Below are positions 17,350 through 64,000 of a DNA stretch of 64,000 nucleotides, one piece after another. The DNA lies in NCBI RefSeq assembly GCF_000315625.1, contig NW_005434630.1:508711-572710 (forward strand), read 5' to 3'. The position numbers were made by a program, and so were the translations under genes. Origin of the DNA: Guillardia theta CCMP2712. Its lineage: Eukaryota > Protista > Cryptophyta. The notes below the pieces were generated by a model. That model was not told where the DNA came from and did no database searches. It saw only the letters and a list, made by a program, of their open reading frames with translations. How positions within the stretch are numbered: position 1 is the first letter of the stretch; every line of letters begins with the position of its first letter.

Positions 17350-20300
17350 TCAGGGCCCTTCCGTCACATCGCAGGGTCGCATGGCAGGAGAGGACGCGGC
17401 GTTGAGCTCCTTCCACGCCCTCTCCCCGCTGCTGAGCTTCAGCTGGAGACTCTCTTGGATCTCCCGCATCTTCTGCTCGTGCGCAGACGTGCTCTGCCTG
17501 ATCTTTGCGCGGGTCTTGTCGTCCTGCTGGGGAAGAGCTGAGTGGACGGCAGTTGCGAGCTTCAGGTCCCTCTCCCGCGTCTGCTTCCTGTACTTGCCGT
17601 TCTTCCCCGCCGCCTTCTCCACCATCTTGAGCTTTGCGCTCTCTGCTGCTCGGCAGATCCGCTCGAGGCGTATGGCGACGATCTCCCTCCTCTGCCGCTG
17701 CGCGTCCTGCTGGTACCAGTCCAGGAACTTGAGGATTTCCTTTACGTCATCCGCCCCCTCGCCGCCCTCCTCCATGCCCTCCTCCTCCCGGTCCAGGTCC
17801 ATGCTGCCGCTCTGCCGGACATGCCGGGAGGGGAGGAAGCGCTCGGCAACCTCGGCGTCCTCGATGGCCTTGAGGATGATGCGACGGTTCTCCTCGACTT
17901 GCCCGAGCACATTGCGGAACACGAGGATCATGGCGACCTGCAGGTCCTGCTCCTGCGGGAACGAGTGGAAGAGGCGGAGGAGGAGCTCAAGGCCGCAGCC
18001 CTCGCGGAAGGAAGCCTTCTCCGCCACCCACTCGAAGCTGAAGCCCTGCATGAGCATGGCGGCGCCAGAGGAGGAGAGAGGAGCTTGAAGGCAGTGGATG
18101 ATGAGCTTGTCCCGCAGGTCGAGGAGACCGACCTCAAGCATCATCGTCCTGATCTGATTTGAGTTGCGATTCGCCACCCGATTGAGGATCCTGACAACGC
18201 GAAGCGGGAGAGCAGGGGAGGAGGAGGAGGAGGAGGAGGAGGAAGATGAAGGAGAGGACAAAGAGGAGGAGGACTCGACAAGACGTCGGAAGATCCGCTC
18301 CAAGCTCTTGAGCACGGCGTTGACGTTGGGAGTCTGAGCCGGAGAAATCTCAGCGTTCTCCTCTAGCCGCTGGAGAATCTGGGATGCAAAAGTTAGTCCA
18401 GCGTGGACGGATGAGGAGGAGAACGAAAGGGTTGGAAGGAAGGGAATGCTTGCAGGTAGGAGGAGGTAGAGGGTTACCTCTTCCAGGACGGGGAGATACA
18501 GCAGGTCGTTTCGAATCAGCTCCTTCACATTCAGAACCTTCACGTCCTGCCACAGCCCGTGCCATGCCATGCTCCCTGCCACCCTCCCGATCGTCTCCCT
18601 CAGTTCTCTCTGCGTCCGCTCCCACTGGTCCCCTCGCCCTCGCCCTGCCCGCCCCTCCTCCTCCAGCCGCATGAGGATGCGTCGGCAGCAGTCAAGGCCG
18701 CCGGAGAGGAGGAACTTGACGGAGCTGAAAGGGTCGTCGAGGAGGAGGAGGACGCGCTTGCAGACGTCTAGACTCGCATCTTCCTCCTCGAGAGCAGGGA
18801 GAAGGTTCAGCAAGACCTGTAGGAGGTAGAAGTTCGGAAGCAGCACGGGCTCTTTCTCTGCCCTGCTCTCCGCCGCAGCCTTCCGCAGCAGCGCTGACGT
18901 GGCGTGCTGGAGCAGCGCATTGACGAGCATCATGCTGCTCCTCTGCGCTGGAGGACCTCAAGCATGAGCTCGAAGCCGCAGGACTTGAGGAAGAGCTTGC
19001 AGTCCTTGGGGGAGGAGAGGAGGAGGGCCAGGACATCGACGCCCCTGCAGCGCAGGCTCTCGTCCTCTGAGGAGAGGAGGCAAAAGCCGAGCTGGAACCC
19101 TCCTGCCGCTCGGAGGTAGTCGAGAGGGACGACAGAGGAGGAGGAGAGGGTGAGGAGGAGGAGCATGAGGTCGTTGTTGACCTGCGAGAGGTGCGGCAGG
19201 TGCATCCGACCGATCACCGCTTGCATGATCTCCGACACGTCGTTGACTGTCCACAGCCTGCAGGACCAGTCAGATGCATGGAGGAAGTGGGAGAGGCGAG
19301 GAAGGGAAGGTGAGGATTGCGAGGAAGGCAGAACAGAAGAAAGAAGGGAGGAGGGGGAAGAGGAAGTGGGGAAGGAGGATGAAGATGGAAAGGTGAGGAT
19401 AGGAAGGGGAGGATCGAGGAGGAAACTGGACCAGACATGGCGTGCAAGGAAAGGTTTGAACTTACGGCGCAAGCTGCTGCATGAGGGAGATGGAGATGGT
19501 CCAGAAGGAGGGGGGGAGAGCATCAAGAAAGTAGAGGAGGCGAGAGGTCCCGAGGAGAGGATACGACATCCACATGGTCCGGCTGCTGCTGGAGGACATG
19601 AAGCTGTCCTCAAGCACCCGCAGCAGGTCGCGCTGGATGTCGGAGGAAGAGGAGGGGATGAGGTCGACGAGGAGGAGGGAGACTTCAGGGTCTCTGAGGG
19701 TCTTTCCTCCTACCTCCTTGGAGGAGAGGTGCAGGAGGAGAGACATGACGGGGCCTTGGTCTCCTCCCCGGCCCAGCTGCTGGTGCACGACGTAGCAGAG
19801 AATCTGCAGGATGGTGTGAGGAGGGAGCGAAGAGAGAGAGGAGGGAGGAGGGAGGAGGGAGGAGGGAGGAGGACGGAGGAAAAGAGAGTGGAGACGAAGT
19901 AAGGGAGAAGGTAGGGGAGGAGAGGCTGCGAAGGAAGTACAGCAGAGGAATGGGGGATGAAAAAGAGGAGGAGGAGGAGGAGGAGGAGGAGGAGGAGGAG
20001 CAATGGGTTTCATACGCTGCATCCTTTTGCTGCCAGGAAAGCTCTGAAATTCGGTTCCCAGCGGACGAGAAGACCAACAAGAACCTCAAGCGCTTGAAGT
20101 TGAAGCTGCTCCTCTTGCGGAGAGATGAGCCTGCTCCCGACATTATCTCTCCTCTCCTCCCTCCCCTCCCCTCCCCTCCCCTCCCCTCCTCTTTTCTCTC
20201 TTTCTCTGGCTTCTGCTGCTCACCTTAGCGCTAGTTGAATGCCCCCGATCTGCAGAATCGTAAGGAGAAGGAAGTGAATGATGGGGAAACGAGACTGAGA

Positions 20301-50542: not shown

Positions 50543-50693
50543 AGCCTGTGGCGTTCCGCCTCGCATCATCACCCAAGTCCACCAAGCTTCCGCCCGGTGA
50601 GCAATGGCGACCGCCACCTTGAAGTCGGCGCAGGATCGGCATTGGTAAAGATGGGCCCTCGGCCTCGCCCGCACAGTCCAGACACACTCCCCC
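50543..50693 (-). ncRNA. 7SL: SRP RNA (7SL), internal fragment between gaps
   Basis: Same sequence as the helix 5/6 region of complete copies. Confidence 0.7.
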
Positions 50694-51369
50694 NNNNNNN
50701 NNNNNNNNNNNNNNNNNNNNNNNNNNNNNNNNNNNNNNNNNNNNNNNNNNNNNNNNNNNNNNNNNNNNNNNNNNNNNNNNNNNNNNNNNNNNNNNNNNNN
50801 NNNNNNNNNNNNNNNNNNNNNNNNNNNNNNNNNNNNNNNNNNNNNNNNNNNNNNNNNNNNNNNNNNNNNNNNNNNNNNNNNNNNNNNNNNNNNNNNNNNN
50901 NNNNNNNNNNNNNNNNNNNNNNNNNNNNNNNNNNNNNNNNNNNNNNNNNNNNNNNNNNNNNNNNNNNNNNNNNNNNNNNNNNNNNNNNNNNNNNNNNNNN
51001 NNNNNNNNNNNNNNNNNNNNNNNNNNNNNNNNNNNNNNNNNNNNNNNNNNNNNNNNNNNNNNNNNNNNNNNNNNNNNNNNNNNNNNNNNNNNNNNNNNNN
51101 NNNNNNNNNNNNNNNNNNNNNNNNNNNNNNNNNNNNNNNNNNNNNNNNNNNNNNNNNNNNNNNNNNNNNNNNNNNNNNNNNNNNNNNNNNNNNNNNNNNN
51201 NNNNNNNNNNNNNNNNNNNNNNNNNNNNNNNNNNNNNNNNNNNNNNNNNNNNNNNNNNNNNNNNNNNNNNNNNNNNNNNNNNNNNNNNNNNNNNNNNNNN
51301 NNNNNNNNNNNNNNNNNNNNNNNNNNNNNNNNNNNNNNNNNNNNNNNNNNNNNNNNNNNNNNNNNNNNN

Positions 51370-51638
51370 GGGCTCCGGGTGATCCGCCCCCCAATTCACC
51401 CACGTGATCGCTTCACTGATGACGGCGGAGACTTTTCCTTGCTCTGTTTCCAGCCTGTGGCGTTCCGCCTCGCATCATCACCCAAGTCCACCAAGCTTCC
51501 GCCCGGTGAGCAATGGCGACCGCCACCTTGAAGTCGGCGCAGGATCGGCATTGGTAAAGATGGGCCCTCGGCCTCGCCCGCACAGTCCAGACACACTCCC
51601 CCCGCTCGGGCTACAGCCAGGCGCGACCCTGGCCGGGA
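51370..51638 (-). ncRNA. 7SL: SRP RNA (7SL), 3' end lost in gap
   Basis: Alu domain, helix 6 and helix 8 present. Confidence 0.8.
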
Positions 51639-51778
51639 AAGCTCTCCGAGGCATCGAACCTCGCCATAAGGGCCTTCAACCCTGAGAGCCGCCTCTCCTC
51701 CCCTCCCCTCCCCTCCCCTCCCTTGACGCTCCCCAGAGGTTGCGAGCCCCTGACCCTGGGCCTTCCCCCAGAGAGAGC

Positions 51779-52081
51779 AAAACATTGCGCGTGCCTGTCC
51801 CATCCTAGCAGGGCTCCGGGTGATCCGCCCCCCAANNNNNNNNNNNNNNNNNNNNNNNNNNNNNNNNNNNNNNNNNNNNNNNNNNNNNNNNNNNNNNNNN
51901 NNNNNNNNNNNNNNNNNNNNNNNNNNNNNNNNNNNNNNNNNNCCCGGTGAGCAATGCAGACCAGAACTCTTGAAGTCGTAGCAGAGATCGGCACTTGTAA
52001 AGATGGCAGGCATGCCTCGTCTGCACAGACCAGCCACACTCTCTCCTCTCGGGCTACAGCCAGGCGCGACCCTGTCCGGGA
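51779..52081 (-). ncRNA. 7SL: SRP RNA (7SL), gapped divergent copy
   Basis: Both ends present; many substitutions next to the gap. Confidence 0.6.
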
Positions 52082-52221
52082 AAGCTCTTCGAGGCATCGA
52101 GCCTCGCCATAAGGGCCTTCAACCAGGAGAGCCTCCTCTCCTCCCCTCCCCTCCCCTCCCCTCCCTTGACGCTCCCCAGAGGTTGCGAGCCCCTGACCCT
52201 GGGCCTTCCCCCAGAGAGAGC

Positions 52222-52522
52222 AAAACATTGCGCGTGCCTGTCCCATCCTAGCAGGGCTCCGGGTGATCCGCCCCCCAATTCACCCACGTGATCGCTTCAC
52301 TGATGACGGCGGAGACTTTTCCTTGCTCTGTTTCCAGCCTGTGGCGTTCCGCCTCGCATCATCACCCAAGTCCACCAAGCTTCCGCCCGGTGAGCAATGG
52401 CGACCGCCACCTTGAAGTCGGCGCAGGATCGGCATTGGTAAAGATGGGCCCTCGGCCTCGCCCGCACAGTCCAGACACACTCCCCCCGCTCGGGCTACAG
52501 CCAGGCGCGACCCTGGCCGGGA
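52222..52522 (-). ncRNA. 7SL: SRP RNA (7SL), complete, ~300 nt
   Basis: Alu domain UCCC-G-GCCAGG(gucgcg)CCUGGC-UGUAG-CCC(gagc)GGG-GGGA; helix 5 GUGUGUCUG/CAGGCACGC; helix 6 CCGGGC-GGAA-GCUUGG; helix 8 CAGG-CUG-GAAA-CAG-AGCA (SRP54 site); ends in UUUU. Confidence 0.9.
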
Positions 52523-52574
52523 AAGCTCTCCGAGGCATCGAACCTCGCCATAAGGGCCTTCAACCCTGAGAGCC
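52523..52574 (-). ncRNA. 52-nt tRNA-like element fused 5' of SRP RNA (representative copy; others start at 51639, 52082, 52979, 55704, 56175, 56615, 57066, 57566, 58022, 59381, 59822)
   Basis: Acceptor GGCUCUC/GAGAGCU plus discriminator U; middle hairpin AGGG-UUGAAGG-CCCU; T arm CGAGG-UUCGAUG-CCUCG (B-box GGTTCGANNCC); one tRNA arm missing. Confidence 0.75.
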
Positions 52575-52677
52575 GCCTCTCCTCCCCTCCCCTCCCCTCC
52601 CCTCCCCTCCCCTCCCATCCCTTGACGCTCCCCAGAGGTTGCGAGCCCCTGACCCTGGGCCTTCCCCCAGAGAGAGC

Positions 52678-52978
52678 AAAACATTGCGCGTGCCTGTCCC
52701 ATCCTAGCAGGGCTCCGGGTGATCCGCCCCCCAATTCACCCACGTGATCGCTTCACTGATGACGGCGGAGACTTTTCCTTGCTCTGTTTCCAGCCTGTGG
52801 CGTTCCGCCTCGCATCATCACCCAAGTCCACCAAGCTTCCGCCCGGTGAGCAATGGCGACCGCCACCTTGAAGTCGGCGCAGGATCGGCATTGGTAAAGA
52901 TGGGCCCTCGGCCTCGCCCGCACAGTCCAGACACACTCCCCCCGCTCGGGCTACAGCCAGGCGCGACCCTGGCCGGGA
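52678..52978 (-). ncRNA. 7SL: SRP RNA (7SL), complete
   Basis: Same motifs as the 52222-52522 copy. Confidence 0.9.
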
Positions 52979-53207
52979 AAGCTCTCCGAGGCATCGAACC
53001 TCGCCATAAGGGCCTTCAACCCTGAGAGCCGCCTCTCCTCCCCTCCCCTCCCCTCCCTTGCCGCAGGTGAGGGGGAGGGAGGGCAAAAGCTTTCCATATT
53101 ATTGGGCNNNNNNNNNNNNNNNNNNNNNNNNNNNNNNNNNNNNNNNNNNNNNNNNNNNNNNNNNNNNNNNNNNNNNNNNNNNNNNNNNNNNNNNNNNNNN
53201 NNNNNNN

Positions 53208-54703
53208 CGATCTCTTCGCGTATGCGACGCCAGCAGCTCGGGACATCGCGCGCCGGCTGCAGGAGTTCATGCGGGAGTGCGTGTATCCGGCCGAGGAGAG
53301 CGTCATGCGCCATGCGCAGGGCAAGGAGCGCTGGACGGTACCGGCAGAGGTGGAGGAGCTCAAGGAGGAGGCGAAGAGGAGGGGCCTCTGGAACCTCTGG
53401 ATCACGCGCGACCTTGATCCCGGACATGATGGCGCGGGCTTGACCAACGTCGACTACGCGGGGCTCGCGGAGGTGCTGGGGGCGGTTCCCTTCGCATCCG
53501 AGCTGGTCAACTGCTCGGCGCCGGACACAGGGAACATGGAGGTGCTGCTCAAGTACGGGAGCGAAGAGCTCAAGCGCAAGTTCCTCCCCGACCTCCTCAG
53601 CGGCAAAGCAAGGAGCTGCTTCGCCATGACTGAACCAGCCGTCGCCTCCTCCGATGCCACCAACGTGCAGTCGACGATCCGGAGGGAGGGCGATCGCTAC
53701 GTGCTCAACGGGAGGAAGTGGTGGACGTCAGGCGCCATGGATCCGCGATGCAGCGTCATGATCTTCATGGGCAAGACGGACCCGTCGGCTCCTCGTCACC
53801 AGCAGCAGTCCATGGTTGTCGTTCCCATGCCCTCCCCGGGACTCCGCGTCCTCCGTCCCCTCAGAGTCTTCGGCTTCGACGACGCTCCTCACGGCCATGC
53901 GGAGGTCGAGCTCAAGGACGTCTCAGTCCCCGCCAGTCACCTCCTCCTCGGCGAGGGTCGAGGCTTCGAGATCGCGCAGGGCAGGCTCGGGCCTGGGCGC
54001 ATCCACCACTGCATGAGGCTCATCGGACTCGCTGAACGTTCGCTGGCGCTCATGTGCAAGCGAGCCAAGCAACGAGTCGCCTTCGGGAAGAAGCTGGAGG
54101 AACAAGGGACCATCAGGGCTGACATCGCTCGCGCTAGGCTCATGATCAACCAGGTCTCCTCTTGCCGCTGCCCTCCGCTTCTCCTCCCTGCCTCTCACCT
54201 TCTCTCAGACTCGACTCCTCTGCCTCGACGCCGCTCGTGCCATCGACATGGGAGGACCCAAGGCAGCGCGGGAGGCCATCGCGCTCATCAAGGTGACGGG
54301 AGGAGGAGGAGGAGGAGTCCCTGACGCCCTGCAGGTCGCGGCACCTCAGATGGCAGTCTGGGTCACCGACAGAGCCATGCAGGTTCAGTCCCTCATCACC
54401 CTACTGCTCCTCTTGCTCCTGCTCTCCCTTCGCCTTGTTGTCGTTCCTCCTTCTCCATCCCCCTCATCCTAGAGCGAGGGTTCTCTGCTTCTCTTTCCCT
54501 CACGTGCAGCAGGTGCATGGAGCCGCAGGCTTCTGCGACGACTTTCCTCTCTCCTTCCTCTACGCTCAGGTAACATCAGCACATCTTGACCCACACCCCC
54601 TCATCTCGAGCAGGCGCGAACCCTCCAGATGGCCGACGGACCTGACGAGGTTCACTTGGAAAGCATCGCAAGGATGGAGCTCAACAAGCACAAACAAGAC
54701 TAG
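53208..54703 (+). CDS. Acyl-CoA dehydrogenase, ACAD10/11/IBR3/FadE2 type (5' end in gap)
   Basis: [74 protein letters not shown]. Confidence 0.95.
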
Positions 54704-54909
54704 AACAACAAATCAGATGCATCTACAATACAACCAATCGAAACGCAAAGACAACCTTCAACCCTGAGAGCCGCCTCTCCTCCCCTCCCCTCCCCTCCCC
54801 TCCCCTCCCCTCCCCTCCCCTCCCCTCCCCTCCCCTCCCTTGACGCTCCCCAGAGGTTGCGAGCCCCTGACCCTGGGCCTTCCCCCAGAGAGAGCAAAAC
54901 ATAGAGAGC

Positions 54910-55203
54910 AAAACATTGCGCGTGCCTGTCCCATCCTAGCAGGGCTCCGGGTGATCCGCCCCCCAATTCACCCACGTGATCGCTTCACTGATGACGGCGG
55001 AGNNNNNNNNNNNNNNNNNNNNNNNNNNNNNNNNNNNNNNNNNNNNNNNNNNNNNNNNNNNNNNNNNNNNNNNNNNNNNNNNNNNNNNNNNNNNNNNNNN
55101 NNCACCCAAGTCCACCAAGCTTCCGCCCGGTGAGCAATGGCGACCGCCACCTTGAAGTCGGCGCAGGATCGGCATTGGTAAAGATGGGCCCTCGGCCTCG
55201 CCC
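54910..55203 (-). ncRNA. 7SL: SRP RNA (7SL), partial gapped copy
   Basis: 3' end and helix 6 region visible. Confidence 0.65.
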
Positions 55204-55538
55204 NNNNNNNNNNNNNNNNNNNNNNNNNNNNNNNNNNNNNNNNNNNNNNNNNNNNNNNNNNNNNNNNNNNNNNNNNNNNNNNNNNNNNNNNNNNNNNNNN
55301 NNNNNNNNNNNNNNNNNNNNNNNNNNNNNNNNNNNNNNNNNNNNNNNNNNNNNNNNNNNNNNNNNNNNNNNNNNNNNNNNNNNNNNNNNNNNNNNNNNNN
55401 NNNNNNNNNNNNNNNNNNNNNNNNNNNNNNNNNNNNNNNNNNNNNNNNNNNNNNNNNNNNNNNNNNNNNNNNNNNNNNNNNNNNNNNNNNNNNNNNNNNN
55501 NNNNNNNNNNNNNNNNNNNNNNNNNNNNNNNNNNNNNN

Positions 55539-55703
55539 ATCATCACCCAAGTCCACCAAGCTTCCGCCCGGTGAGCAATGGCGACCGCCACCTTGAAGTC
55601 GGCGCAGGATCGGCATTGGTAAAGATGGGCCCTCGGCCTCGCCCGCACAGTCCAGACACACTCCCCCCGCTCGGGCTACAGCCAGGCGCGACCCTGGCCG
55701 GGA
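55539..55703 (-). ncRNA. 7SL: SRP RNA (7SL), 5' half
   Basis: Alu domain and helix 6 present; rest in gap. Confidence 0.7.
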
Positions 55704-55873
55704 AAGCTCTCCGAGGCATCGAACCTCGCCATAAGGGCCTTCAACCCTGAGAGCCGCCTCTCCTCCCCTCCCCAAGCATCTAGGAGCTTCCCGTCCCCTC
55801 CCCTCCCCTCCCCTCCCTTGACGCTCCCCAGAGGTTGCGAGCCCCTGGCCCTGGGCCTTCCCCCACAGAGAGA

Positions 55874-56174
55874 ACAACATTGACCGTGCCTGTCCCATCG
55901 TGGCAGGTCTCCGGGTGATCCGCCCCCCAATTCACCCACGTGATCGCTTCACTGATGACGGCGGAGACTTTTCCTTGCTCTGTTTCCAGCCTGTGGCGTT
56001 CCGCCTCGCATCATCACCCAAGTCCACCAAGCTTCCGCCCGGTGAGCAATGGCGACCGCCACCTTGAAGTCGGCGCAGGATCGGCATTGGTAAAGATGGG
56101 CCCTCGGCCTCGCCCGCACAGTCCAGACACACTCCCCCCGCTCGGGCTACAGCCAGGCGCGACCCTGGCCGGGA
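55874..56174 (-). ncRNA. 7SL: SRP RNA (7SL), full length with variant 3' end (no T4 run)
   Basis: Core motifs intact; 3' end reads ...GGCACGGUCAAUGUUGUUC. Confidence 0.8.
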
Positions 56175-56313
56175 AAGCTCTCCGAGGCATCGAACCTAGC
56201 CATAAGGCCATTAACCCCTGAGAGCCGCCTCTCCTCCCCTCCCCTCCCCTCCCTCCCTTGACGCTCCCCAGAGGTTGCGAGCCCCTGACCCTGGGCCTTC
56301 CCCCAGAGAGAGC

Positions 56314-56614
56314 AAAACATTGCGCGTGCCTGTCCCATCCTAGCAGGGCTCCGGGTGATCCGCCCCCCAATTCACCCACGTGATCGCTTCACTGATGACG
56401 GCGGAGACTTTTCCTTGCTCTGTTTCCAGCCTGTGGCGTTCCGCCTCGCATCATCACCCAAGTCCACCAAGCTTCCGCCCGGTGAGCAATGGCGACCGCC
56501 ACCTTGAAGTCGGCGCAGGATCGGCATTGGTAAAGATGGGCCCTCGGCCTCGCCCGCACAGTCCAGACACACTCCCCCCGCTCGGGCTACAGCCAGGCGC
56601 GACCCTGGCCGGGA
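56314..56614 (-). ncRNA. 7SL: SRP RNA (7SL), complete
   Basis: Same motifs as the 52222-52522 copy. Confidence 0.9.
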
Positions 56615-56764
56615 AAGCTCTCCGAGGCATCGAACCTCGCCATAAGGGCCTTCAACCCTGAGAGCCGCCTCTCCTCCCCTCCCCTCCCCTCCCCTCCCCT
56701 CCCCTCCCTTGACGCTCCCCAGAGGTTGCGAGCCCCTGACCCTGGGCCTTCCCCCAGAGAGAGC

Positions 56765-57065
56765 AAAACATTGCGCGTGCCTGTCCCATCCTAGCAGGGC
56801 TCCGGGTGATCCGCCCCCCAATTCACCCACGTGATCGCTTCACTGATGACGGCGGAGACTTTTCCTTGCTCTGTTTCCAGCCTGTGGCGTTCCGCCTCGC
56901 ATCATCACCCAAGTCCACCAAGCTTCCGCCCNNNNNNNNNNNNNNNNNNNNNNNNNNNNNNNNNNNNNNNNNNNNNNNNNNNNNNNNNNNNNNNNNNNNN
57001 NNNNNNNNNNNNNNNNNNNNNNNNNNNNNNNNNNNNNNNNNNNNNAGGCGCGACCCTGGCCGGGA
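56765..57065 (-). ncRNA. 7SL: SRP RNA (7SL), gapped copy
   Basis: Both ends and helix 8 visible. Confidence 0.8.
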
Positions 57066-57200
57066 AAGCTCTCCGAGGCATCGAACCTCGCCATAAGGGC
57101 CTTCAACCCTGAGAGCCGCCTCTCCTCCCCTCCCCTCCCCTCCCTTGACGCTCCCCAGAGGTTGCGAGCCCCTGACCCTGGGCCTTCCCCCAGAGAGAGC

Positions 57201-57565
57201 AAAACATTGCNNNNNNNNNNNNNNNNNNNNNNNNNNNNNNNNNNNNNNNNNNNNNNNNNNNNNNNNNNNNNNNNNNNNNNNNNNNNNNNNNNNNNNNNNN
57301 NNNNNNNNNNCCGCCCCCCAATTCACCCACGTGATCGCTTCACTGATGACGGCGGAGACTTTTCCTTGCTCTGTTTCCAGCCTGTGGCGTTCCGCCTCGC
57401 ATCATCACCCAAGTCCACCAAGCTTCCGCCCGGTGAGCAATGGCGACCGCCACCTTGAAGTCGGCGCAGGATCGGCATTGGTAAAGATGGGCCCTCGGCC
57501 TCGCCCGCACAGTCCAGACACACTCCCCCCGCTCGGGCTACAGCCAGGCGCGACCCTGGCCGGGA
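57201..57565 (-). ncRNA. 7SL: SRP RNA (7SL), gapped copy
   Basis: Alu, helix 6 and helix 8 visible; gap near the 3' end. Confidence 0.8.
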
Positions 57566-57720
57566 AAGCTCTCCGAGGCATCGAACCTCGCCATAAGGGC
57601 CTTCAACCCTGAGAGCCGCCTCTCCTCCCCTCCCCTCCCCTCCCCTCCCCTCCCCTCCCCTCCCTTGACGCTCCCCAGACTGACCCTGGCCTTCCCCCAG
57701 AGCCTTCCCCCAGAGAGAGC

Positions 57721-58021
57721 AAAACATTGCGCGTGCCTGTCCCATCCTAGCAGGGCTCCGGGTGATCCGCCCCCCAATTCACCCACGTGATCGCTTCACT
57801 GATGACGGCGGAGACTTTTCCTTGCTCTGTTTCCAGCCTGTGGCGTTCCGCCTCGCATCATCACCCAAGTCCACCAAGCTTCCGCCCGGTGAGCAATGGC
57901 GACCGCCACCTTGAAGTCGGCGCAGGATCGGCATTGGTAAAGATGGGCCCTCGGCCTCGCCCGCACAGTCCAGACACACTCCCCCCGCTCGGGCTACAGC
58001 CAGGCGCGACCCTGGCCGGGA
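57721..58021 (-). ncRNA. 7SL: SRP RNA (7SL), complete
   Basis: Same motifs as the 52222-52522 copy. Confidence 0.9.
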
Positions 58022-58176
58022 AAGCTCTCCGAGGCATCGAACCTCGCCATAAGGGCCTTCAACCCTGAGAGCCGCCTCTCCTCTCCTCCCCTCCCCTCCC
58101 CTCCCCTCCCCTCCCCTCCCTTGACGCTCCCCAGAGGTTGCGAGCCCCTGACCCTGGGCCTTCCCCCAGAGAGAGC

Positions 58177-58328
58177 AAAACATTGCGCGTGCCTGTCCCA
58201 TCCTAGCAGGGCTCCGGGTGATCCGCCCCCCAATTCACCCACGTGATCGCTTCACTGATGACGGCGGAGACTTTTCCTTGCTCTGTTTCCAGCCTGTGGC
58301 GTTCCGCCTCGCATCATCACCCAAGTCC
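58177..58328 (-). ncRNA. 7SL: SRP RNA (7SL), 3' half
   Basis: Helix 8 and terminator visible. Confidence 0.7.
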
Positions 58329-59077
58329 NNNNNNNNNNNNNNNNNNNNNNNNNNNNNNNNNNNNNNNNNNNNNNNNNNNNNNNNNNNNNNNNNNNNNNNN
58401 NNNNNNNNNNNNNNNNNNNNNNNNNNNNNNNNNNNNNNNNNNNNNNNNNNNNNNNNNNNNNNNNNNNNNNNNNNNNNNNNNNNNNNNNNNNNNNNNNNNN
58501 NNNNNNNNNNNNNNNNNNNNNNNNNNNNNNNNNNNNNNNNNNNNNNNNNNNNNNNNNNNNNNNNNNNNNNNNNNNNNNNNNNNNNNNNNNNNNNNNNNNN
58601 NNNNNNNNNNNNNNNNNNNNNNNNNNNNNNNNNNNNNNNNNNNNNNNNNNNNNNNNNNNNNNNNNNNNNNNNNNNNNNNNNNNNNNNNNNNNNNNNNNNN
58701 NNNNNNNNNNNNNNNNNNNNNNNNNNNNNNNNNNNNNNNNNNNNNNNNNNNNNNNNNNNNNNNNNNNNNNNNNNNNNNNNNNNNNNNNNNNNNNNNNNNN
58801 NNNNNNNNNNNNNNNNNNNNNNNNNNNNNNNNNNNNNNNNNNNNNNNNNNNNNNNNNNNNNNNNNNNNNNNNNNNNNNNNNNNNNNNNNNNNNNNNNNNN
58901 NNNNNNNNNNNNNNNNNNNNNNNNNNNNNNNNNNNNNNNNNNNNNNNNNNNNNNNNNNNNNNNNNNNNNNNNNNNNNNNNNNNNNNNNNNNNNNNCTCCC
59001 CCTCCCCTCCCCTCCCCTCCCTTGACGCTCCCCAGAGGTTGCGAGCCCCTGACCCTGGGCCTTCCCCCAGAGAGAGC

Positions 59078-59380
59078 AAAACATTGCGCGTGCCTGTCCC
59101 ATCCTAGCAGGGCTCCGGGTGATCCGCCCCCCAATTCACCCACGTGATCGCTTCACTGATGACGGCGGAGACTTTTCCTTGCTCTGTTTCCAGCCTGTGG
59201 CGTTCCGCCTCGCATCATCACCCAAGTCCACCAAGCTTCCGCCCGGTGAGCAATGGCGACCGCCACCTTGAAGTCGGCGCAGGATCGGCATTGGTAAAGA
59301 GTCGGGCCCTCGGCCTCGCCCGCACAGTCCAGACACACTCCCCCCGCTCGGGCTACAGCCAGGCGCGACCCTGGCCGGGA
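59078..59380 (-). ncRNA. 7SL: SRP RNA (7SL), complete (2-nt insertion in helix 5)
   Basis: Same motifs as the 52222-52522 copy. Confidence 0.88.
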
Positions 59381-59520
59381 AAGCTCTCCGAGGCATCGAA
59401 CCTCGCCATAAGGGCCTTCAACCCTGAGAGCCGCCTCTCCTCCCCTCCCCTCCCCTCCCCTCCCTTGACGCTCCCCAGAGGTTGCGAGCCCCTGACCCTG
59501 GGCCTTCCCCCAGAGAGAGC

Positions 59521-59821
59521 AAAACATTGCGCGTGCCTGTCCCATCCTAGCAGGGCTCCGGGTGATCCGCCCCCCAATTCACCCACGTGATCGCTTCACT
59601 GATGACGGCGGAGACTTTTCCTTGCTCTGTTTCCAGCCTGTGGCGTTCCGCCTCGCATCATCACCCAAGTCCACCAAGCTTCCGCCCGGTGAGCAATGGC
59701 GACCGCCACCTTGAAGTCGGCGCAGGATCGGCATTGGTAAAGATGGGCCCTCGGCCTCGCCCGCACAGTCCAGACACACTCCCCCCGCTCGGGCTACAGC
59801 CAGGCGCGACCCTGGCCGGGA
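59521..59821 (-). ncRNA. 7SL: SRP RNA (7SL), complete, first (most upstream) unit of the array
   Basis: Same motifs as the 52222-52522 copy. Confidence 0.9.
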
Positions 59822-59873
59822 AAGCTCTCCGAGGCATCGAACCTCGCCATAAGGGCCTTCAACCCTGAGAGCT
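59822..59873 (-). ncRNA. tRNA-like element of the first unit, with fully Watson-Crick acceptor stem AGCUCUC/GAGAGCU
   Basis: Repeat homology ends at this element's 5' end; unique AT-rich sequence lies upstream. Confidence 0.75.
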
Positions 59874-60359
59874 ATTGTTTTGTTGTGTTCAAATTAATTG
59901 TGCATCTGGTCGGACCATCCATGCACAAAAGAGAAGAGGAAGTTGTTTCGGTTCGAGGAGGTTGAGAAGTGCATGAGGAATGATGAGGAGGACATGGACC
60001 AGGAGGAGGACGAGGAGGAGCCAGACGAGGACGTGGACGAGGACGAGGTAGCAGCAGAAGGTATGAGGAGGAAGAGGAGGAAGAAGAGGAAATATAAGGA
60101 TTTATCAGGAGGAAGACGAGGAGTTGGAGGAAGCAGGAGGTATGAGGAGGAGGAGGAGGAGGAGGAAGCAGGAGGTATGAGGAGGAGGAGGAGGAGCAGG
60201 AAGCAGAAGCAGGAGCAGCGGCAAGAAGAGGAGGAAGCAAGAGGAGGAGGAGGGGTGGGGGGGGGGCGAGCAGGAGAAATCCGCGGCCTCTGCTGCTGCT
60301 TTATGCTGCCCCTCCGCACGAGGGTGAAGAAAAAAGAAAGGGGGAGAGCAGAGGAAACT

Positions 60360-63709: not shown

Positions 63710-64000
63710 TACCTTTCCTGTCCTTCTTTCCTTCCTCTCCCCTCTCCTCCCCCCCTCCCTTCCTCCCACTCCCCCTCCCTCCCCCCACTCCCCCTTCCTT
63801 CCCCTCCCCTCCCCCTCCCTTCCCCTCCCTTCCCCTCCCCTCCCTTCCCCTCCCCTCCCCCTCCCTTCCCTTCCCCTCCTCTCCCTTCCCCTCCCCTCCG
63901 TTCCCTTCCCCTCCGTTCCCTTCCCCTCCTCTCCCTTCCCCTCCTCTCCGTTCCCTTCCCTTCCCCTCCCTTCCCCTCCTCTCCTCTCCTCTTTCCTCCC
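63710..64000. repeat. Polypyrimidine (CCCCT/CTTCC)n low-complexity tract
   Basis: Directly visible. Confidence 0.95.

Follow-up and report, generated by a model that had tools for sequence, protein, structure and literature searches.

Introduction

The SRP RNA of eukaryotes is regarded as a primary transcript of Pol III, the 5′ end of which is the start site. In bacteria, the 5′ end of the 4.5S (SRP) RNA is made by RNase P, which acts directly on the SRP hairpin. The tRNA mimics of the mascRNA type, namely the MALAT1 mascRNA and MEN-beta elements, lie 3′-terminally in Pol II lncRNAs and give rise to a 3′ end via RNase P.

Several RNAs are expressed together with a tRNA or a tRNA-like sequence. 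The known heterologous Pol III dicistrons comprise tRNA-snoRNA, tRNA-miRNA, tRNA-5S, and tRNA-RUF70 units, with examples in Yarrowia (tRNA-5S rRNA and tRNA-RUF70), plants (tRNA-Gly-snoRNA), and MHV68 (tRNA-miRNA), and neither SRP RNA nor a non-decoding mini-tRNA is among the dicistrons listed (Acker et al., PMC2566860). A second arrangement is the leader promoter of Saccharomyces cerevisiae RPR1, an 84-nt tRNA-like leader that is removed from the mature RNA; SNR52 is likewise of the leader type (PMC2566860). In trypanosomatids, the 7SL and snRNA genes are accompanied by a tRNA-like B-box element, which is divergent, lies ~105 bp upstream, is separately transcribed and acts as DNA (PMC4950102). 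No fusion of a tRNA-like element to 7SL was found described in the literature searched.

Here, a stretch of 64,000 nt from the genome of Guillardia theta CCMP2712 (the window; G000:C44:508711-572710, in a genome of 87 Mb and 669 contigs) was analyzed, in which the SRP RNA genes directly follow a 52-nt miniature tRNA. The best explanation for this arrangement, with a probability of roughly 0.6, is that the leader and the SRP RNA form a precursor that would be read by Pol III and cut by RNase Z, and that the leader would at the same time serve as a promoter of the leader type.

The SRP RNA Gene Array

Nine full SRP RNA genes were found on the minus strand of the window with the Rfam model RF00017, at scores of 110–135 bits. 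The gene described here (52226–52522) was of full length: it scored above the gathering score, comprised both the Alu and the S domains, and its alignment (52230–52521, minus strand) covered model positions 1–299 at 134.6 bits. The Alu domain was canonical in this alignment. The genes belonged to a tandem array on the minus strand (Table 1) with at least 12 assembled SRP 5′ ends, which was interrupted by many assembly gaps and by ~1.7 kb of foreign sequence (53065–54755). An open frame of 351 aa that resembled a fragment of acyl-CoA dehydrogenase (53269–54324, plus strand) was observed inside the array beside an assembly gap, where it may reflect either an insertion or a mis-join. All array units were separated by (GGGGA)n microsatellites (e.g., 52575–52620), which also recurred near 20150, 49900, and 63800–63920 of the window. 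Within the 353-nt unit of leader, SRP gene, and T4 run, the TTTT at 52222–52225 was the only one.

The mini-tRNA leader abutted all 12 assembled SRP 5′ ends. Ten leader copies were identical except that in the most upstream one an A instead of G at position 1 turned the G-U pair into an A-U pair. The two variant leaders (52082–52133 and 56175–56226, minus strand) had pair-breaking changes, and both belonged to decaying units: the SRP of one gave no Rfam match, and in the other the T4 run had become TTGTT. As pair-breaking changes occurred only in units with a decayed SRP or terminator, the leader and the SRP decay together. The identity of the array copies reflected recent duplication and is therefore not independent evidence; independent support for the module came from its diverged paralogs. 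The original prediction had placed the element at each SRP gene. This was true of the whole array and failed for a degenerate SRP copy on another contig (C24), which had no such element.

Table 1. Positions of the leader, the SRP RNA gene, and associated features in the window.
Feature	Position	Strand	Description and evidence
Tandem array	50543..59873	-	units of leader, SRP, T4, trailer, and (GGGGA)n; motif and BLAST mapping
Mini-tRNA leader, 52 nt	52523..52574	-	R1 77.2 bits; fold; sequence reading
Leader acceptor stem, 7 bp	52568-52574 paired with 52524-52530	-	G1-U wobble and six Watson-Crick pairs
Leader D-like hairpin AGGG/UUGAAGG/CCCU	52553-52567	-	4-bp stem, 7-nt loop, GG at 3′ end of loop
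Leader linker UAUGG, 5 nt	52548-52552	-	
Leader T arm	52531-52547	-	5-bp stem, loop UUCGAUG
Pol III B box in leader T arm, perfect	52534..52544	-	GGTTCGATGCC (GGTTCGANNCC); consensus as in own tRNA genes
Leader discriminator U	52523	-	
SRP (7SL) RNA	52226..52522	-	predicted mature 5′ end U52522; RF00017, RNA contigs, start of homology in C24 copy
First T4 run past leader start	52222..52225	-	likely Pol III terminator and/or U-tail of SRP RNA
SRP trailer, diverged second mini-tRNA copy	52169..52221	-	directly after T4 run; T loop degenerate
Leader of first (most upstream) array unit	59822..59873	-	A at position 1
AT-rich TATA-like box upstream of first unit	59888..59901	-	AATTTGAA at -22..-15 from leader position 1

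Anatomy and Classification of the Leader

The sequence of the minus strand from 52574 to 52523 was identical to the element originally predicted, and the predicted fold was the minimum-energy structure of the leader alone (−24.1 kcal/mol, z −2.1; 6 of 200 shuffles were as good). This fold stayed intact when the whole 353-nt unit was folded. The element was said to adjoin the SRP gene without a spacer, and indeed the discriminator U52523 was directly followed by U52522 and CCC, the opening of SRP Alu helix 2. The hallmarks of a tRNA were present, including the 7-bp acceptor stem, the T arm with its 5-bp stem and UUCRANN loop, and the discriminator. The anticodon arm was missing. The middle hairpin had been read either as a D loop or as a Phe anticodon loop. 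The D-loop reading was favored because the GG at the 3′ end of the loop was kept in the copies found behind the U3 and SRP genes and U33 was not kept; the Phe-anticodon reading was dropped.

No tRNA was reported by ARAGORN on the leader in standard, relaxed, or mitochondrial modes, and its sole call at the lowest threshold was mis-registered across the leader/SRP junction. The Rfam tRNA model RF00005 gave no match to the leader at E ≤ 10. The best Rfam match of the leader was mascRNA-menRNA (RF01684) at 19.4 bits (E 0.049 on 101 nt), below the threshold of 42.5. The leader is not a tRNA gene and not a decoding tRNA. Its A box was weak, with three of the six specified consensus positions matched (judged by eye from a comparison with the genome's own tRNA genes), and the spacing between the A and B boxes was shorter than in tRNA genes.

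RNA Coverage and the 5′ End of the SRP RNA

Contigs from two RNA runs covered only 52234–52512 and 52236–52513. The raw RNA reads, all in SRP sense, piled up at 52455–52514, and a few of them reached 52515–52529; neither 52530–52605 nor the spacer on the 3′ side carried any. The SRP flanks were evenly covered by a DNA-like run. Among ~40 reads and 3 contigs, none spanned the leader/SRP junction. In the 14 rows of RNA-type runs, ~0.33–0.76 of the 521-nt query was contained, which was about the share of the SRP body, and the DNA-like rows contained 0.83. The restriction of RNA contigs and reads to the SRP body indicated that the steady-state SRP RNA does not carry the leader. The leader adjoins each intact SRP gene, yet it is missing from the mature RNA; therefore, the two are most likely made as one transcript and then separated by an enzyme of tRNA processing.

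Thirteen reads stopped matching at 52512/13 and went on with a constant ATG (plus-strand orientation) and ~8 letters that agreed poorly among the reads. These letters look like an adapter or template-switch junction and not like RNA sequence. Owing to these adapter-like ends, the 5′ boundary of the RNA was placed only within ~52510–52529. A mature 5′ end at 52512/13 was rejected, since in that case the 5′ strands of Alu helices 2 and 3, both retained in the gene, would be lost.

The sole SRP copy outside the array was located on contig C24 (L009 1380–1960; G000:C24:213154-213734). It was ~99% identical over the aligned SRP stretch, lacked the leader, and was degenerate, with two insertions of 21 nt and ~57 nt. 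Its homology to the array set in precisely at U52522, immediately behind the discriminator, and extended to the T run. This boundary, known from one copy in a rearranged region, would fit a derivation of the copy from a 5′-processed RNA. It is suggestive of a retro-copy and was not accepted as a clean one, as the locus carried inverted duplications of its own flank. The insertions and the upstream flank had GTAAATCCTAT-type motifs in common, partly as inverted copies. The locus suggests a hairpin-forming or transposon-linked rearrangement.

Once released, the mini-tRNA could itself be a functional small RNA, either as a partner of SRP, comparable to the tRNA-like RNA of trypanosomatids, or as a mascRNA-like RNA, and this role could be added to the main explanation. 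The stable fold and the weak Rfam resemblance to mascRNA would be in line with such a role. However, the canonical Alu domain of the SRP RNA needs no substitute, and the leader was not attached to the mature SRP RNA. The proposed role as SRP partner was thus unnecessary, and a function for the released RNA was considered highly improbable.

Predicted Transcription Start, Promoter, and Terminator

The U6 gene of this genome had AATTTGAA at −22 to −15 from its own +1, the same 8-mer at the same offset as in the unique DNA that precedes the first array unit, where it is measured from leader position 1. By chance, agreement in an 8-mer at an identical offset anywhere within 60 nt would occur about once per thousand trials. 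If measured from the SRP start, the box of the first unit would sit at approximately −70. Position 1 of the leader was a purine (G or A), and the junction UUUCCC contained none, so the argument from a purine start in the original prediction was upheld. From leader position 1 to the SRP end there were only T3 runs, and no T4 was located between the leader and the SRP. The tRNA genes of this genome had TATA at approximately −30 and ended in T4–T7 within 0–15 nt, and its genuine tRNAs contained internal TTT. A tRNA-Thr(CGU) gene was followed after ~10 nt by a tRNA-Ser(CGA) gene with no T4 between them (G000:C45 ~202402–202570, L078), and this pair is a probable dimeric tRNA gene. The spacing of the box, the purine, and the lack of an internal T4 together predicted a start at the leader and read-through into the SRP. 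In the inner units, (GGGGA)n took the place of the AT-rich box; as they lack a TATA-like box, their own expression is uncertain.

The U1, U2, and U6 genes (L101–L104, L059) shared an upstream element, GCCCGCCATCG(A/G)G, at approximately −69 to −53. In U1 and U2 this element was located at −69, and these genes then had a CAAACAAA-type 3′ box. In U6, the snRNA-type upstream element (GCCCGCCATCGG at −64) was ~5 nt closer to the start and was combined with the AT-rich box, which is a plant-like USE/TATA layout. The U3 and SRP genes did not have this element and had the mini-tRNA modules instead.

The joint transcription of leader and SRP, the polymerase, the cutting enzyme, and the precise position of the cut are inferred from these features as follows. 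The leader and the SRP RNA would be one transcription unit, with Pol III as the most likely polymerase in view of the B box, the U6-like box, and the T4 end. The start would lie at or just before the purine at mini-tRNA position 1 and would be set by the TATA-like box (in the first unit) and the leader B box. The polymerase would pass the TTT at the junction and end at the T4 run that follows the SRP. On its own, the leader would fold into a stack of the acceptor stem and T arm with a D-like elbow, and RNase Z would cut after the discriminator U52523, giving an SRP RNA with a 5′-monophosphate at U52522. The leader would be a leader-type promoter and a cut-here signal at once.

Alternatively, the leader may act as a promoter only, that is, as a B-box DNA module that binds TFIIIC and lies outside the precursor, with the SRP RNA starting at its own first base. 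The B box is perfect, and the U3 genes, which are without the upstream element of the snRNA type, have the same module 3′ of their T4 run, in a position that recalls a downstream B box. The tRNA-like sequences at trypanosomatid 7SL and snRNA genes would be a precedent, although those elements are divergent and ~105 bp away (PMC4950102). However, when measured from the SRP start, the leader B box would sit at −22 to −12, where the initiation complex of TFIIIB and the polymerase must sit. In addition, the junction has no purine, the spacing of the U6-like box fits a start at the leader, and compensatory changes preserve the stems of the module, something that a DNA site bound by a protein would not require. 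This alternative was regarded as unlikely.

Related Modules at Other Genes

The original prediction missed a second, diverged copy of the module 3′ of each SRP gene. This SRP trailer was present in every unit, where it aligned over its full length with the covariance model R1, which was built from the SRP leaders and U3 trailers, at a weak 11.2 bits. It also aligned from end to end with both the leader and the U3 trailers, and it shared the junction AAU-N-UUUU/GCUCU with the U3 trailers. Since the SRP trailer is homologous to the leader and the U3 modules, each SRP gene is bracketed by two homologous modules. The fold of the trailer was no better than that of shuffles (z only −0.9).

In all three U3 genes, the T4 run was directly followed by a 50-nt element that aligned over its full length with the SRP leader. 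The U3 trailers and the leader had GCUCU, AGGG, GGCCC, and the T arm in common. A 48-nt element with the same three-part build as the mini-tRNA module was located ~48 nt 3′ of one H2A gene. Among the 150 candidates scored per genome search with R1 and a second model, R2, the SRP array, the three U3 trailers, and the H2A trailer were the only matches, which gives a lower bound. The H2A trailer was the next R1 match after the SRP array and U3, and nothing else among the matches listed was strong. A search of the genome for the T-arm pattern returned mostly noise; the ten exact matches examined outside the array and the U3 genes were coding sequences or true tRNAs. No adjoining mini-tRNA was found at the U6, MRP, U1, and U2 genes.

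In an alignment of the modules with ten distinct rows (A3), which was fitted to the model so that its pairing figures lean towards structure, 93.6% of the cells paired, compared with 82% in shuffles and 38–65% with slid partners. Compensatory changes occurred in 7 of the 14 pairs, and none of 500 shuffles was as good. The conservation of the stems rather than of the sequence argues for a role of the module at the RNA level.

These modules bear on the possibility that the leader is a non-functional relic, i.e., a tRNA-derived fragment that lay beside the ancestral SRP gene, was co-amplified with it and is kept only by homogenization of the array. The array copies are near-identical through recent duplication, and other species offered no support for a function: a metagenome scan with a pattern that joined a B box to the 5′ motif of the SRP Alu domain gave six loci, all of which were chance matches on bacterial-like contigs with no SRP match. 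However, the discriminator abuts the SRP start exactly, the T arm is canonical, and the paralogous modules at U3, the SRP 3′ flank, and H2A keep the fold despite changes of sequence. Moreover, pair-breaking changes in the leader were confined to units whose SRP or terminator had decayed as well. A relic was therefore held to be very unlikely.

Candidate Processing Enzymes and Possible Array-Wide Processing

At least two RNase Z homologs, matched exon by exon, were encoded in the genome, together with one gene for the protein-only RNase P, PRORP (G000:C100:26975-27586, plus strand). The nuclear RNase P RNA gave no match with the Rfam model in the genome, a result short of proving its absence. 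An MRP RNA gene was present (L060), without a T run just downstream. Owing to their positions, different cuts are expected at the two kinds of modules: RNase P would cut at those 3′ of the U3 and histone genes, and RNase Z would cut at the SRP leader, which is 5′ of its gene.

The leader had been proposed to supply a B box and/or a processing signal. The perfect B box, the absence of the leader from the mature RNA, the lack of a T4 run between leader and SRP, the U6-type box, and the RNase Z homologs agreed with this proposal, while the precursor was not seen among the reads and contigs.

The bracketing of each SRP by two homologous modules could also be explained by a long precursor of the array or of several of its units, in which RNase Z would cut after each leader and RNase P (PRORP) before each trailer, leaving a UUUU 3′ end. 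The TATA-like box was found in the first unit only, T4 is at the short end of the terminator lengths of this genome, the AAU-N-UUUU/GCUCU junction is common to the U3 trailers, and a PRORP gene is present. On the other hand, the spacer and the trailer had no RNA coverage, the T loop of the trailer was degenerate and its fold was not better than that of shuffles, and long Pol III transcripts are unusual. Array-wide processing was judged unlikely as well, and a precursor of one leader and one SRP RNA was preferred.

A broader, tentative idea is a nuclear “tRNA punctuation” in G. theta, in which mini-tRNAs without an anticodon would bracket the SRP RNA and follow genes for U3 and histones. The 5′ end of the SRP RNA would then be made by RNase Z, and U-tailed 3′ ends by the protein-only RNase P. 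We consider this idea doubtful. If it were true, the inner SRP units without a TATA-like box could be carried on polycistronic transcripts that read through from the first unit, and the SRP RNA would have a processed 5′-monophosphate instead of the usual primary triphosphate.

Comparison with Known Systems

The only intact SRP genes of this free-living alga appear to need tRNA-type processing for their 5′ end. As proposed here for G. theta, the 5′ end of the bacterial 4.5S RNA is made by a tRNA-processing enzyme, but the bacterial RNA has no tRNA-like leader and does not involve RNase Z. The trypanosomatid 7SL promoters also couple a tRNA-like element with a conserved B box to a 7SL gene. That element is divergent and ~105 bp upstream, whereas the G. 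theta leader is on the same strand with no spacer.

The mascRNA family (RF01684), the best and sub-threshold Rfam match of the leader, likewise consists of non-decoding tRNA mimics that are recognized via the acceptor stem and T arm. In contrast to mascRNA, the G. theta element is at the 5′ end of its RNA and would use RNase Z to make that end. Within its own genome, the leader belongs to the same sequence family as the U3 trailers and shares its build with the H2A trailer; the trailers are 3′ of their genes, whereas the leader is 5′ and may carry the promoter. If the SRP 5′ end is indeed made in this way, the SRP leader and the U3 and histone trailers together would point to a lineage in which miniature mimics of tRNA are general signals for making the ends of nuclear RNAs. 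The leader would also offer, in compact and natural form, a cassette that releases RNAs with exact ends.

As in RPR1 and SNR52, the putative promoter elements of the G. theta unit would belong to a transcribed 5′ leader, which the mature RNA lacks. The G. theta leader has a perfect B box, and it differs from that of RPR1 in its weak A box and conserved fold. In RPR1, the leader does not form a closed tRNA fold with a terminal discriminator at the mature 5′ end.

If the main explanation is true, SRP RNA would join the short list of RNAs that are expressed behind a tRNA-shaped leader (PMC2566860), and such a leader need not be a real tRNA. Like the dicistrons of that list, the G. theta unit has a tRNA-shaped leader in the same orientation, with little or no spacer and no run of T ≥ 4 between the two parts, and its downstream RNA would be released by tRNA-processing enzymes. 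Unlike them, its leader is a mimic without an anticodon arm instead of a decoding tRNA, and the RNA that follows it is SRP RNA.
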